From assembly GCA_964057225.1 (NCBI GenBank), contig OZ059898.1:5580001-5644000 (forward strand): DNA of 64,000 nt, read 5' to 3'. Numbering within the stretch: the stretch's first letter is position 1; each line of letters opens with the position of its first letter. This DNA is from Auanema rhodensis. Lineage: Eukaryota; Animalia; Nematoda. Below, piece by piece: positions 23,439-29,616 of the stretch. The position numbers and the translations under genes were made by a program. The notes beneath the pieces are model-generated. The model searched no databases and was not told the DNA's origin. It saw nothing but the letters and a program-made list of their open reading frames with translations.

Positions 23439-24202
23439 GTTGAAACGATGCTTCACGAGATATTACAAAATTATATAACTATTTCCCTTTTATAGCCGTA
23501 CTACATTAATGTCAATAGTCAGTACCATCTTGAAAACTCAAGTATCCACACGACATGTTGAAGTTGCACGCAGAATTTGGAAACTGAAGTAAAATCCACA
23601 ATTTGTTATTCAGAAATCTTTTCACGATTATTTTCAAAAGAATACATAAACAGTACCATTATACCGAATAATGTTAAGAGCTATATCTTTTGTCCTTTCT
23701 GATATTTATTATGAAATATTAAAGTTTCGTAAACTTATTGATGAAAGTTGACCATATTGAAACTGTACAAATTTGAAATCTCATGAAAAGATTTAGATAT
23801 GCTACGTTTTGAAAAATTAGAACATTCTTAGAAATAATGTGAGCTTTATCTCAAGTACTTAATTTTCATCTCTTCATGTAGACCATGAACTAGAACAGGA
23901 AAAAAATTTTAATCTTATTTTATAACTTCTATTTAAAATATTTTTACAATGTCTCTTTCAAGCTTGCGCGTAAAATCCTGTTAATCTGATTTCTTGGTCA
24001 AAACAAAGTCACGCCTTTGTAAATCGGCACTTGCTGTTTACCAATTAACTGCGCGCTCTAAAATAAAAATATTCGTCGTTTGGTTTAAATAATACAACCT
24101 ATACCTATTGAGATTTTATTGATTCTAGTTTTTTAAACTCTAGTGATTATATCAATATAACGGATTTAAACTTTCATAATATTAATCTTACTATATAGCA
24201 GA

Positions 24203-24820
24203 ATGATTCGATCTATTTTAACAATTCCTCGTATTTCTGTTCGTTCCCTGACATTGTCATCTCGGTCTTCAGTTGAAGCACCAACAAAAAGGGAAGTAGA
24301 TGATCTGTTTTCGGAAAAACCTCAAGATAGAAAGAAAAATAGCTTCAGGTTTATTAGAAGGAATTTATTTCTTCAAGCAATATTGAATTTTGTAGCAAAA
24401 ATCATGTAGAAATAGTTGGTGGTGTTGCCAATGATCCTTTCCACAAAATTGGTCAAAACAATAGAGGTTTCACTGTTATTAATGTTATTACCAATAACAG
24501 ATACAAATTGAGCAATGGGGAATTTGCTGAAACTGTAAGTTTATCTCTCATAGAATTCTTCATATAATAATTGTCCATTCAGAACGAAAGACATGCAATC
24601 ACATTTTTCGGGAAGCAAGCAGAATTTGTAGCTAAATCAATTAAGAAAGGTAATGATACACTATAATTTCTAACTAAATAAGTTTTCAGGAAATCGCGTC
24701 ATGGTTGATGGTCGTTTACATTATACTGGTGGTCAACTGCAAGAAAATGGACAACGAACTCCAAGACAAACTCATATTCACGGTGAAAACATTCAATGCT
24801 TGGCTGCCCGTAGGGACTGA
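24203..24820 (+). CDS. mtss-1: Mitochondrial single-stranded DNA-binding protein, 4 exons
   Basis: Arg/Ser-rich presequence, KREVDDLFSEKP, then OB-fold segments NHVEIVGGVANDP, TERHAITFFGKQAE and KKGNRVMVDGRLHYTGG. Closely matches recalled C. elegans MTSS-1. Confidence 0.93.
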
Positions 24821-25031
24821 GGTTCTTACCACTCTATGATCTTATTGTGAGAATTTACCTGACTCTGTTTTAAATATTGTGTAGGGCTTTTGTTGATCAG
24901 TTTAATTAGGTTGTTGTTATTGTTATTGAAATTCATGAAAAAAAGTTTCTCTATACTATTTAAGGTTTTAGTCCTCAAATATTTTATATTATTGATTGAG
25001 TCATCAGAAATATGTTTCTTGCAGTTGTTCG

Positions 25032-27685
25032 ATGAATCGCTCCGCAAAAATCATTTTGTCAGCCACATGCGGTCCTCAGCGACAAACATTGAGCAGGTAT
25101 GTTTTTAAGTCAAATTTCCCTTTGAGTCATTTTAACGAAGCGAATGAAATTAAGCAACAAAACATTGCTACACTCTGTCTTTGAAAATCGATTCTCTCTT
25201 TGTTTATATAATACATTTGTTTTGATATTATGAGTCGGGAGTACGTGGCTCTCCCGGAACCTCGTTCATTTTTGTTTCCGAATGAAACTAATTGGCTGTT
25301 TATTGTTCGGGTAATTTAATTTTTTGCTTGACTTATGTTTTTATATACATTTCTTAATGTCTGCATTGCTTTTTAACCACATTTGTTTAAAGAACATTTG
25401 GACGATTTTTCTATCTGGATCATTAGGTCTTTTTTGAAAAGCTGTCCCAATTTTCATGCCTTATAGTTAAGTCTTTAACTATTTAGTTGCTTTAACGTTT
25501 TTTAGCTAAGCCCAACTGTTTAAATAAATTTAAACTTTGAAAACGTTACGTTGTTTGATATTGGTCAATGCCATCTACATATCTCTGTACGTTATTTCTG
25601 TTTTTTGTTAACAACATTTGTTCAGGTATCATGGTTATACAGATTTCTCGCGAGGAGTTATTAAAAAAGGACACTTTCTTGTTCGACGCTGATGGGGTTC
25701 TTTGGACTGGAGAAAATCCTGTGCCTGGTGCTGTCGACTTCGTGAAATCCCTTCTTGCTGCTGGAAAGAGAGTTTTCATTCTCACCAATAATTCTACTAA
25801 GACCATTGACCATTATATGAAGAAGATTGAACGTATTGGTTTTGGTGATATTTCTAAGGAGAATGTTATAAGCCCTGCCATTGTTCTTGTGGACTATCTC
25901 AACGAGAATAAGGATTTCGAAAATCAAAAAGTATATTTAATAGGAACTGAGAATCTTCGTACTATGATCGAAACTGGAAGCACTGTACGTTGCTTTGGGA
26001 CCGGGCCAGATCACATCATGGATTATACAAGTGAAGATATTTTACACAGTGTCGATATTCAGACGATACCAAAAGCTGTAATATGCAGCTTTGATTCACA
26101 TTTCTCTTATCCCAAGATCATGAAAGCCGCAAACTATCTGAAAAGGAAGGACGTCCAATTTTTTATCACCAACGAGGATTACACGTTTCCTGGACCAGAT
26201 CCTAACGTTGTTATTCCTGGCTCTGGTACTACTGCCGCATGTCTTCGAGCTATTGCGAATGATACAGAGCCTATCGTCTTTGGTAAACCACACAAACAAA
26301 TGGCGAATTATTTAAAAAAACGCCACCATATTGATCCATCTTCAACGATTATGTTTGGTGATCGCCTGGATACTGACATTGCATTTGCTAACAATAATAA
26401 CATTGATAGTTGTCTTGTTTTAACTGGTATTCACAGTCTTGCCGATGTCGAAAAAGCTCGACAACAAGAAAAATCTCATCTTATTCCTAAATTCCAATTT
26501 TCGTTTGCTTAGTTTCATTCGCTTCTATGTCGTGTTTTTTTTAATTGTATTAGGTATTAGAAAGTTTGTTGTAATAAATAGTTTTAGGTTCTCGACTTCT
26601 GCCGTAGTGCGTAAAGATGGTCCCAGCGAGCAGCCGAAAGCCCAAGGATGGTTCAGCAAGATCTTGGTATACATATTTTTTTCTTACCTTTTTACAAATG
26701 AAGTTATAGACAGGACAGCAAATGGATCCCTCTGGGTGGCAAAAGCAAAGTCATTCCAGTTTGCTAAGTTCATCAAATGCAATTTACGAGATATCTAGTT
26801 AGTCAAAAGAGGTCATCTTCAGTCTGGAATTTTTTTAGCCCATAATTACAAACCTGGAGAAAAAGAAGAATATTTGGCAAAGTTCGGCAATCTGAAGAAT
26901 GAACTAACAGAAAAAGTTTGGTTTTTTCTTGTGTTGAAATAATTAAAATTTATAGATACCATCTGTTGATTTGGTAGGGTCTTGGACAGTCAGTTATGGA
27001 AGGACCAGAGACCAAGCCATTCATCTTTGGCGGTATTCCAAAGGATACGGAGACGTTGACAGGTTTTCCTGTTTATTAAGTTTTCTTCAAAGCGCACACT
27101 GATATTTTAGCGTTGTGAGACTTGGAGCATCAGATTCAGCTTTGGTAGCAGCTGATAATGATGTGGGGCGCCTTTGTGGAAGACGTAAAAGTGTTCTTGT
27201 AAAGTCCTTCAGCTACTGGAGAGAACCCGAGCAGCGTCCTGCTACTCATGTATATGATATGAGAAGTTATTGTCTTCAGGTGAAGGGATTTACTGTTGTA
27301 TTATATATTTTCTTAATTTAGCCTGGTACAATGATCGAGTGGGCAAATGCATGGGCTAAAGGTATCACTTTCCGCCGTGAGCAGAATCAAGATGTAGGTG
27401 GCTTTTTTGCACAGGTAGAGTTTCGTTTTTCTGCTCATCCTATTCACTATTGCTTTACAGATAGGCCAACTCTATGTTGTCTACCATATTTGGGCTTATC
27501 CATCCATGTCGGCTAGACACGATACTCGAACTCAAACCTGGGCTAAGCCTGGATGGGACGCAACTGTTGCTTACACCGGTATTGTACTTTCTCCTTTTTT
27601 AAAGACACACTTTTTTTCAGTTCCTCTTATAAAAAAGATGCAATCTAAGATTCTAACACCAACTAAGTATTCCCAACTTCAATAA
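25032..27685 (+). CDS. NIPSNAP: NIPSNAP family mitochondrial protein, multi-exon; intron 1 (25097-26587) hosts another gene
   Basis: Exon 1 (25032-25096, MNRSAKIILSATCGPQRQTLSR, phase 2) joins exon 2 at 26588 (FSTSAVVRKDG...GWFSKIL). NIPSNAP motifs YDMRSYCLQPGTMIEWANAWAKGI, GGFFAQIGQLYVVYHIWAY and WAKPGWDATVAYTVPLI. Confidence 0.92.
25631..26512 (+). CDS. Intronless HAD class IIA phosphatase (PGP/glycerol-3-phosphate phosphatase/pNPPase-like), nested in NIPSNAP intron 1
   Basis: Motif I FDADGVLW, motif II LTNNS, motif III FGKP, motif IV GDRLDTD, plus LVLTG. Start placed at ATG 25631, 5 nt after a TTCAG acceptor; the ORF-track start at 25568 is probably intronic. Confidence 0.93.
   Translation: MVIQISREELLKKDTFLFDADGVLWTGENPVPGAVDFVKSLLAAGKRVFILTNNSTKTIDHYMKKIERIGFGDISKENVISPAIVLVDYLNENKDFENQKVYLIGTENLRTMIETGSTVRCFGTGPDHIMDYTSEDILHSVDIQTIPKAVICSFDSHFSYPKIMKAANYLKRKDVQFFITNEDYTFPGPDPNVVIPGSGTTAACLRAIANDTEPIVFGKPHKQMANYLKKRHHIDPSSTIMFGDRLDTDIAFANNNNIDSCLVLTGIHSLADVEKARQQEKSHLIPKFQFSFA
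26573..26587 (+). promoter_or_regulatory. AATAAA poly(A) signal abutting the TTTTAG 3' splice site
   Basis: Sequence gtAATAAAtagTTTTAG|gttctc: AATAAA at 26573-26578, acceptor AG at 26586-26587. Confidence 0.7.
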
Positions 27686-28014
27686 GGAGAATGAGCATAA
27701 CGATCGATGAATTGCATCTCATAATTTCTAGTTCAAGTTTAACCCCATTTATACGATATTATAGATTAGAATGCCTATTCAGCAAACTATTTATGAAGTT
27801 TAGTCAGCCTTATGTTTTTTTAGTGCTTATGACCGGGTGTTTTCTGTGTAGATAGAAGGGGGCTATTAATTAGTTTGGTCATTTCGCAATTTTGAAACGT
27901 GTGTTACTTTCTGTATTATAAATATTTATAATTGCTGGGTTTTCACTCAAGATTGTTTCTTCAATAAGAATATCTGTTTTGCATTTTTTCATTTACAGTT
28001 TCAATGTTTTTAGA

Positions 28015-29152
28015 ATGTCCAAAAATCCTTTTGAGGATGATTTCCGAAGCAGCGGTGTGAACAAAACTAGTATAATTTGTCTAAATTATGCTTTCGAAAA
28101 TAGTTTCTTTTAGACCAAGTAAAAAGCTATACTATGGGCCCGAGTACTATTGAAGACGAAACTGATTATTACGAAAGAGAAATCGAAAAGTATATGCAAG
28201 ACTCTTTGGACTCTACTGAACGTTCTCGACGTCATCTCGAGAACTCTGAAAGGCTTGGTGTTCAAACTGCTCAAGTAATACCTATATTTTACTAATATGT
28301 ATAATTATGTTTTTTTAGGACCTTCTTGAACAAAGAGAGAAGCTGGAAAGAACTGAGAAGAATCTCCAGGACATTCGGCATACTACACAGGTTCGGTAGT
28401 ATATCTGGTGTTGTATTGAAACATTGTAATAGGTAACGCAAAGAAATTTGAACAGTTTGAAATCATTCTTCGGGGGTTTTATAAAAAATAAATTCAGTCG
28501 TAAACCACAGGAACAAATACCATCTGTCAATGTGAGTTTCTGAAATTTTTTGAAATAATTGACTAAAATGTTTGCAGGTTCCCGCTTCAAAATCGTCTTC
28601 TCATCTTAATGATAAATTGAACGATTTAACTCAAGGTGGCTCTACCTCTGCTTCTTTTTCTGGAGGATCAAGTTTAAGTGATTCTTCTCGAGCTGCTCTG
28701 CAAGGGACTCGCTGGGAAGAAATGGATAAGCAAATTGACCAAAATCTTGGTAATACGAAAAATAAGAAATGCTCCGAATATTCTATCATTTTTCAGATAG
28801 CATGGCTGCTAACTTACGCAGTCTGAAAGGATTGGGAGTAGCATTGGGGCGTGAAGTCGAGGAGCAAAATCAAATGTTGGATCGTATCCATGATGTAGCA
28901 TTAGGCAACGACGAAATTATTCGTGCTCAAGACAAACAAGTATAATTTTTCTATTTATACATTTTGGTAGCATCATATATATGACTATTGCAGATGAAAA
29001 AAATACTTGGTCAAGTTGATTCAAAGCCTGATGAGTCTTCATCTGTTCCAAGGTTTCCTATCATTTGTTATTAATATGTTTATATTTGTTTCAGCATGGA
29101 CACATCTACTAAAATGTCTTTAGTCATGAAGGCGGGATCCCTCATGCGTTGA
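28015..29152 (+). CDS. snap-29: SNAP-29 (Qbc-SNARE), multi-exon
   Basis: N-terminal NPF motif (MSKNPFEDD) and two SNARE motifs: SLDSTERSRRHLENSERLGVQTAQDLLEQREKL and EMDKQIDQNL...LGREVEEQNQMLDRI. Confidence 0.95.
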
Positions 29153-29616
29153 GTTCTTTCACCTATATCGGTGTTCCATTTATATACATTCTGTGTACAG
29201 TCCAAAGCAATAAAAGTAATATTTCAACAAAACAACTTAATTATAATTCCTATTTCCAGACTTGAATATTTCGTCGAATACGAATCACTAAATATGTAAA
29301 AAGAATATGATCGCAAGGGTTTTTCAGAGAGGAAATGTGATTTTTCATATAATCTGTTCATATTTTAAATTTTTTTCTAACCAGTGCTTCAATACATTTT
29401 ATGTTCTTTGCATGCATAAAGGCTTTTCATTATTAATTATATAAATTTAAAATCTCAAATTATCTAGATTGTTCACAGAACGTTTATCATTCGAGGTGAA
29501 AATATGACAACGAAAACTGATGACCTCTATATATATCGTTCTAGAATTGATTCATTTAGTCATGGAAATGTTAGCTGAGATATTTCCTCTTGGATTGCAT
29601 CATGTTTGTTTTATCC

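Follow-up and report, generated by a model that had tools for sequence, protein, structure and literature searches.

A poly(A) signal abutting the host 3′ splice site is conserved at a nested HAD–NIPSNAP locus of nematodes

A choice between splicing and polyadenylation at alternative terminal exons separates the secreted from the membrane form of IgM mu and calcitonin from CGRP. A comparable conflict was reportedly set out for nematode SL1-type operons (SL, spliced leader) by Williams, Xu and Blumenthal in 1999, who are said to have expected 3′-end formation and acceptor use to be mutually exclusive on one precursor. The C. elegans locus K02D10.1/pgph-3, which comprises a HAD phosphatase and NIPSNAP and adjoins snap-29, is reportedly the origin of the NIPSNAP family name, going back to Seroussi et al. 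in 1998. Here we describe the corresponding locus in a stretch of 64,000 nucleotides (nt) from the nematode Auanema rhodensis (GenBank assembly GCA_964057225.1, contig OZ059898.1, positions 5,580,001 to 5,644,000 of the forward strand), referred to below as the window, in which a HAD phosphatase gene is nested in the first intron of a NIPSNAP gene and its poly(A) signal abuts the acceptor of NIPSNAP exon 2. The expansion of the name NIPSNAP is cited in PMC7686508, the SL1-type operons of C. elegans are cited from the 1999 work in PMC9258526, and same-strand genes nested in introns have been surveyed in Drosophila (PMC3814207).

Exon 1 of the host gene occupies positions 25025–25096 of the window on the plus strand, as do all features described here. 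Translation from its ATG at 25032 gives a short basic peptide, a 21-residue presequence beginning MNRSAK (MNRSAKIILSATCGPQRQTLS), up to the GT donor at 25097–25098; the distance from ATG to donor is 65 nt and exon 1 is therefore in phase 2. Intron 1 (25097–26587, 1,491 nt) encloses the entire HAD gene, and exon 2 (26588–26666; joints 25096>26588 and 26666>26710) follows a TTTTAG acceptor with its AG at 26586–26587. The RNA evidence consists of Logan contigs from four runs, X1 to X4, all from one study, and our statements on splicing in these runs cover the joints listed for them. The presence of GT..AG joints shows that the contigs derive from RNA, and since the GT..AG joint 25096>26588 was found in all four runs, NIPSNAP intron 1 is real.

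The nested gene is a single-exon open reading frame (ORF) of 293 aa at 25631–26512, with a TAG stop at 26510–26512. It matches the TIGR01452 family PGP_euk with 228.1 bits (cutoff 201.95, E 1.4e-67) as well as Pfam Hydrolase_6 and Hydrolase_like, and the catalytic residues of motifs I–IV (the DxD nucleophile, T/S, K and the acidic pair), here D19, D21, T56, K219, D244 and D249, did not vary among six aligned species. Judged by its sequence, the ORF is a member of the eukaryotic PGP/glycerol-3-phosphate phosphatase subfamily and the orthologue of C. elegans PGPH-3. Its closest match is from Heterorhabditis (65% identity), and the C. elegans match (57%) is a 299-aa protein, the glycerol-3-phosphate phosphatase PGPH-3, whose gene is known for phenotypes in healthspan and under osmotic stress (PMC8752807). 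An exact-sequence look-up of the A. rhodensis HAD protein, both as 293 aa and as a 314-aa extended ORF, matched no public contig, and an Rfam scan of 24000–28600 gave no match. A first-pass annotation of this DNA had described a complete HAD-IIA ORF inside NIPSNAP intron 1, on the strand of the host gene; every coordinate of that description is correct, and the TIGR01452 match and the RNA-backed intron now stand behind it.

Between the HAD stop and exon 2 there is one major poly(A) hexamer, an AATAAA at 26573–26578 that lies 9 nt before exon 2. The 7 nt between its last base (26578) and the acceptor AG at 26586–26587 are exactly those given in the first-pass annotation, and HAD stop, AATAAA and exon 2 are all contiguous within 75 nt. 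Within the window, an AATAAA stands 3–22 nt before 2–2.6% of acceptor-like AG sites. We surveyed all major poly(A) hexamers from the HAD stop to the next NIPSNAP exon in five species with the nested layout. The A. rhodensis gap measures 75 nt with AATAAA 9 nt from the exon, that of C. elegans 159 nt with AATAAA at 13 nt, and that of C. angaria 94 nt with TATAAA at 13 nt. Two overlapping copies of AATAAA are found both in a strongylid-like organism (contig L006; gap of 176 nt, copies 10 and 14 nt from the exon) and in A. ceylanicum (gap of 883 nt, copies at 6 and 11 nt). The A. ceylanicum gap also holds one AATGAA, far upstream, and none of the five gaps contains further major hexamers. The joint chance that all five hexamers fall in the last 20 nt of their gaps is about 2e-5, taking one site per gap and uniform placement. 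As the position 6–14 nt before the exon is kept in five species despite gaps of 75–883 nt, it looks selected. The proposal that a poly(A) signal at this splice site matters gains its strongest new support from this conservation, and comparison of the architecture across species, which had been suggested as a check, showed the abutting hexamer in all five species with the nested layout.

The close contact of HAD poly(A) signal and NIPSNAP acceptor that these species share appears not to have been described before, and it adds to the known layouts in which processing reactions compete. As in SL1-type operons, an upstream poly(A) signal lies a few nucleotides from a downstream acceptor with no intercistronic region. 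In contrast to those operons, the A. rhodensis exon 2 acceptor is used in cis by exon 1 and the upstream cistron sits inside an intron. Only this cis use from exon 1 was seen at the exon 2 acceptor, where leader tips are clipped in Logan contigs. With an acceptor spliced in cis, and with leader addition and cleavage at exon 2 being putative, we do not class the locus as an SL1-type operon. The likeness to IgM and calcitonin is that an intronic poly(A) site competes with intron removal and the choice fixes the protein. Here, however, the products share no coding sequence, and what serves as the internal terminal exon is an entire gene, unrelated to its host and with a 5′ end of its own that is probably trans-spliced. 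Finally, the locus resembles other nested genes in that a complete gene lies in a host intron on the same strand, but the ends of typical nested genes are far from host splice sites, whereas HAD has its 3′ signal within the acceptor region of the host, a conserved overlap.

The basic architecture is already known, since it has long been annotated in C. elegans K02D10.1, and the statement in the first-pass annotation that K02D10.1 is annotated with both HAD and NIPSNAP parts was right. In both species the HAD ORF begins right after an acceptor and its stop comes shortly before a NIPSNAP exon; the C. elegans hexamer stands 13 nt before the NIPSNAP acceptor, and the HAD proteins are the 57% identical pair noted above. 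The C. elegans HAD stop is followed by 31 nt, an acceptor, a coding mini-exon of 17 nt that ends at a donor, and an intron whose last 20 nt contain the AATAAA and the 13 nt that lead to the next NIPSNAP exon. This mini-exon and its donor, which permit splicing of HAD onto NIPSNAP, set C. elegans apart, while A. rhodensis differs in having a 39-nt mini-intron before HAD and a splice from mtSSB to exon 1. A full-text literature search for K02D10.1 returned a single paper, on an unrelated subject, the literature search yielded no paper linking NIPSNAP with operons, and Possik et al. do not address the gene structure.

Public contigs of C. elegans are the most informative on the flanks of the HAD exon. 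A search with the C. elegans NIPSNAP ORF gave no C. elegans protein inside the length limits set, and it did not locate exon 1 of that species. In contig L017 a complete SL1 is joined straight to the HAD ATG, and five other contigs start precisely at the AG|ATG of HAD. Note, 25 letters of uncertain source precede SL1 in L017 (positions 1–47) and may be an adapter or library artefact. At the 3′ side, contigs L015, L016 and L018 fade in the signal-bearing intron before AATAAA, and L001, L003 and L014 run through it. Contig L002 contains the HAD ORF and a further 55 nt ending in a donor that is spliced into all NIPSNAP exons, with the signal-bearing intron removed.

Our preferred explanation, which we regard as evenly balanced between being right and being wrong, is that one and the same RNA cannot be polyadenylated for HAD and also be spliced at the exon 2 acceptor, much as is expected of an SL1-type junction. 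When exon 1 is joined to exon 2, HAD is lost from the RNA, which then codes for NIPSNAP including the presequence. The HAD mRNA, by comparison, would receive a leader at 25626 and end by means of the AATAAA 9 nt before exon 2. Cleavage would be expected about 10–20 nt after the hexamer, at approximately 26588–26598, thus on or just inside exon 2, and it would cut exon 2 off its acceptor. The splicing factor U2AF of nematodes makes direct contact with the acceptor motif UUUUCAG/R, and the poly(A) hexamer is the binding site of CPSF. The two motifs are 3 nt apart at this site, and one bound complex should hinder the other. As about 25 nt hold the poly(A) signal, the 3′ splice site of exon 2 and the place where cleavage is expected, each RNA should give HAD or NIPSNAP but not both.

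Evidence that HAD has a processed RNA of its own comes from its 5′ end. The acceptor upstream of HAD (TTGTTCAG) has its AG at 25624–25625, 5 nt before the ATG at 25631, and requires phase 1. The first-pass annotation held that cis-splicing of exon 1 to HAD breaks the reading frame, and the donor in phase 2 and acceptor in phase 1 bear this out. The acceptor is in use, as seen from a 25586>25626 joint in X3 and from an X4 contig that begins at 25624. By depth accounting, X4 has no contigs over 25396–25623 while its HAD contig (25624–26571) has a depth of 121; with the intron upstream uncovered, the HAD RNA is a separate, 5′-processed species and not merely unspliced precursor. Alignment of this contig begins at 25624, the A of the AG, and three extra letters ahead of it are non-genomic. 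These letters are compatible with a spliced leader ending in GAG or AAG, and the start fits neither exon 1 (ending in GCAG, which would align from 25623) nor the mini-exon described below (ending in TCT, which would align from 25626). We infer that the A. rhodensis HAD mRNA carries a spliced leader at 25626. The claim that HAD undergoes 5′ processing of its own is thus upheld by use of the acceptor and the deduced leader here, and by the directly observed SL1 in C. elegans L017.

The HAD acceptor also serves a mini-intron of 39 nt (25587–25625, GT at 25587 to AG at 25624–25625), which has been removed in X3 but is still present in X1 and X2. It follows the end part of an optional mini-exon (25568–25586) with an ATG at 25568 in the HAD frame, from which the ORF is open over 25568–26512. 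The X3 contig joins 25069–25586 to 25626–26507, and its 5′ part is continuous with read-through from exon 1. The ATG at 25568 shares the HAD frame whether or not the mini-intron is removed: when it is spliced, HAD gains 8 residues, and when it is retained, HAD gains an N-terminal extension of 21 residues, hydrophobic and similar to a signal peptide.

A second AATAAA in intron 1 (25523–25528) lies 97 nt upstream of the HAD acceptor, a spacing like that between operon cistrons. Comparable sites 100–190 nt ahead of the HAD acceptor are present in the L006 organism, A. ceylanicum and C. elegans. Such sites are found in four of the five species, for which we estimate a chance expectation of about 40%. 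We considered this signal as the main 3′ end of the upstream mtSSB gene and rejected it; coverage of 25097–25545 is just 3–27% of the mtSSB depth and in X4 it ends at 25395.

At the 3′ side of HAD, depth accounting in X2, X3 and X4 shows no contig between the HAD ends and 26585, and in these three of the four runs no contig bridges HAD to exon 2. The first-pass annotation had proposed that each precursor yields either NIPSNAP or the phosphatase. The part that stands is that RNA joined from exon 1 to exon 2 drops HAD and that HAD RNA is separate. The strictly binary form does not, since the read-on RNA of C. elegans L002, in which the HAD exon is spliced to NIPSNAP, represents a third outcome. 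A read-on splice of the C. elegans kind was also considered for A. rhodensis, using a 34-nt mini-intron from GT 26554 to AG 26587. The X2 contig ends at 26555, yet the depth accounting has no spliced branch, and this candidate is unsupported.

Several observations weigh against mutual exclusion. The HAD contigs end at 26507 in X3, 26555 in X2 and 26571 in X4, which is 2–66 nt short of AATAAA, and they carry no poly(A) letters. The Logan assembler clips short dead-end tips, and spliced leaders or poly(A) ends near branch points are invisible in its contigs. In X1 the whole of intron 1 is retained in one collinear contig, 25069–26615, which passes through AATAAA into exon 2. The C. elegans contigs L014 and L002 are likewise collinear over both cistrons, with the reservation that contigs do not prove single molecules. 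As the X1, L002 and L014 RNAs pass the signal, the switch is at best leaky.

These read-through contigs bear on a different explanation, in which the locus is a single gene that uses alternative 5′ exons, in line with the annotation of K02D10.1. HAD RNA would mostly ignore AATAAA, carry NIPSNAP exons 2–9 as a long 3′ untranslated region (UTR) and end at the NIPSNAP poly(A) site. The HAD ORF spliced onto NIPSNAP exons in C. elegans L002 is what this explanation calls for, and the X1 contig also agrees with it. However, a contig over two ORFs does not prove one molecule, X2–X4 have no contig over 26572–26585, or from even earlier, at HAD depths of 32–121, and the conserved poly(A) hexamer would be left without a role. 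We consider this explanation improbable.

A stronger competitor, although still one that we think somewhat unlikely, is that HAD is an independent nested gene with its own promoter in intron 1, an SL1-trans-spliced outron and its own poly(A) site, and that no switch exists. The signal beside exon 2 would merely stop HAD transcripts before they reach the NIPSNAP body, and the two mRNAs would come from separate precursors. The leader on C. elegans HAD is SL1, which is typical of promoter-proximal genes, and an X2 contig begins at 25415, within intron 1; both are compatible with an intron-internal promoter and thus count against a choice made on one RNA. The depth of the HAD exon is 32–121 and that of NIPSNAP contigs 191–281 over the four runs, and the HAD:NIPSNAP ratio varies from 0.12 to 0.59 between runs, which agrees with an independent gene; contig depth, a mean per contig, is nevertheless a poor proxy for expression, which also limits what it can lend to a switch. 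In N. americanus HAD is tandemly duplicated (L019 7001–8140 and 13511–14500), and each copy is followed by AATAAA, 3–5 nt and an acceptor-like TT[TC]AG. No NIPSNAP exon was found within 400 nt after these HAD signals, and the examined stretch has neither exon 1 nor exon 2. That each copy retains AATAAA ties the signal to HAD; its persistence with no neighbouring exon 2 suits an independent gene and is a further point against a signal maintained for competition with that exon. Against the independent gene stand the X1 and X3 contigs, which are unbroken from exon 1 read-through into HAD, and the placement of the signal, which abuts the acceptor even in A. ceylanicum where 883 nt of space are available and where a terminator would need no such position. 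Moreover, the promoter in intron 1 is hypothetical.

That the main product could be an in-frame HAD–NIPSNAP fusion protein is suggested by database models of 375–526 aa, including predictions in H. bacteriophora, S. vulgaris and A. costaricensis (P0001, P0007 and P0012). We find this hardly credible. HAD ends in its own TAG at 26510–26512, no phase 2 donor lies near the HAD end (the GT at 26427 is in phase 1), and no in-frame joint from HAD to exon 2 is present among the joints listed. Even in C. elegans L002, where HAD is spliced onto NIPSNAP, a stop comes between the two ORFs, whose frames differ, and the RNA encodes no fusion protein. The three fusion models join HAD to NIPSNAP at three different points, and they are therefore probably gene-prediction artefacts of the nested layout. 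The suspicion that the fusion is merely apparent is accordingly well founded, given the HAD stop and the frames that differ from NIPSNAP both here and in C. elegans.

Exons 3–6 of NIPSNAP (26710–26797, 26839–26915, 26956–27062 and 27111–27279) and exons 7–9 (27322–27414, 27461–27578 and 27621 onward) have their joints in all four runs, and the later introns, of 40–48 nt, were every one confirmed by RNA joints. The stop is a TAA at 27683–27685 and the 3′ UTR extends to at least 27903 in RNA contigs. Translation of exons 2–9 gives a NIPSNAP1/2-type protein. When NIPSNAP exons were searched one by one against PF07978, exon 8 matched with 45.3 bits (cutoff 22.3) and exons 5 and 7 more weakly, and the exons are 77–92% identical to those of C. 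elegans and A. ceylanicum. Strongylid NIPSNAP proteins in databases start MNR...K|FST, which corresponds to the same join of exon 1 to exon 2.

Upstream of NIPSNAP lies mtSSB, whose last three exons (24396–24534, 24583–24649 and 24690–24846, with a TGA stop at 24818–24820) have joints in all four runs. Its identity comes from the SSB-like translation and from tblastn matches in A. ceylanicum and C. angaria that adjoin SSB genes with PF00436. Before NIPSNAP exon 1, mtSSB has no canonical signal for polyadenylation. Instead, a GT..AG intron of 178 nt (24847–25024) connects the mtSSB 3′ UTR with NIPSNAP exon 1, and each of the four runs has its joint, 24846>25025. The donor at 24847 is 26 nt past the mtSSB stop, the acceptor at 25024 is 7 nt before the NIPSNAP ATG, and depth accounting (24847–24987) shows no contig across the 178-nt gap. 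After this splice the NIPSNAP ATG is in the mtSSB frame behind a single TGA, a one-in-three event by accident. The mature RNA may be a bicistronic mtSSB–NIPSNAP mRNA, or else the actual end of mtSSB and a leader attached to exon 1 may be hidden by tip clipping.

Downstream, a SNAP-29-like SNARE gene occupies 28014–29432. Its ATG at 28015 is one base after an acceptor, its product has an N-terminal NPF motif, and it begins at least about 110 nt past the last NIPSNAP contig end, which is an operon-like spacing. With this gene extending the cluster, the region as a whole has the look of an operon. Yet another gene is indicated by contigs that start at about 29477.

An extended possibility, which we treat as improbable, is a three-way choice on one mtSSB-driven polycistronic precursor, the border of HAD and exon 2 being a true SL1-type junction inside a cis-spliced intron. 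Splicing of exon 1 to exon 2 would give mitochondrial NIPSNAP, partly as a bicistronic mtSSB–NIPSNAP mRNA; a leader on HAD combined with cleavage at the acceptor would give a cytosolic glycerol-3-phosphate phosphatase; and a leader on exon 2 would give a NIPSNAP without presequence, translated from a conserved Met in exon 3. If this were true, the overlap of signal and splice site would set the ratio of the products and would link mitochondrial quality control to glycerol metabolism.

The compound locus met in A. rhodensis, with HAD between the presequence exon and the NIPSNAP body and with mtSSB and a SNAP-29-like gene on its flanks, has clear counterparts in other nematodes. The order mtSSB, HAD, NIPSNAP is found in A. 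ceylanicum and is kept in the strongylid-like organism (L006–L008), and C. angaria has mig-22-like, mtSSB, HAD, NIPSNAP and a SNARE gene, the last of which, following NIPSNAP, matches PF12352. HAD relatives in C. nigoni, M. belari (Mesorhabditis), P. pacificus and B. xylophilus are not adjacent to NIPSNAP; these are either paralogues or reflect absence of the arrangement in those species, and they are uninformative. In A. ceylanicum (L005 6001–6075, 7379 and 9169) the frame of a presequence exon, MNRAG..., fits the HAD exon as well as exon 2, and the deposited HAD model P0006 includes the presequence, so HAD might be mitochondrial there. HAD and NIPSNAP might thus share a presequence in this hookworm, which the phases forbid in A. 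rhodensis. The intron between NIPSNAP exons 2 and 3 of C. angaria (L009 8390–8710) contains about three tandem copies of a repeat of about 100 nt.

Collectively, the observation of a HAD poly(A) signal at the NIPSNAP splice site is confirmed and its interpretation as a processing choice is partly supported. For annotators the locus holds a warning, as several HAD–NIPSNAP fusion proteins in databases are probably artefacts of the nested layout. The NIPSNAP family was named after this nematode locus, yet the way in which the locus is expressed has gone unanalysed in the literature, and it can be tested directly in C. elegans. If mutual exclusion is true, the locus would be a natural case, conserved across Caenorhabditis, hookworm and the A. 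rhodensis lineage, of the cleavage and splicing machineries competing on the same stretch of about 25 nt, and the idea of the SL1-type operon would extend to genes nested in introns.

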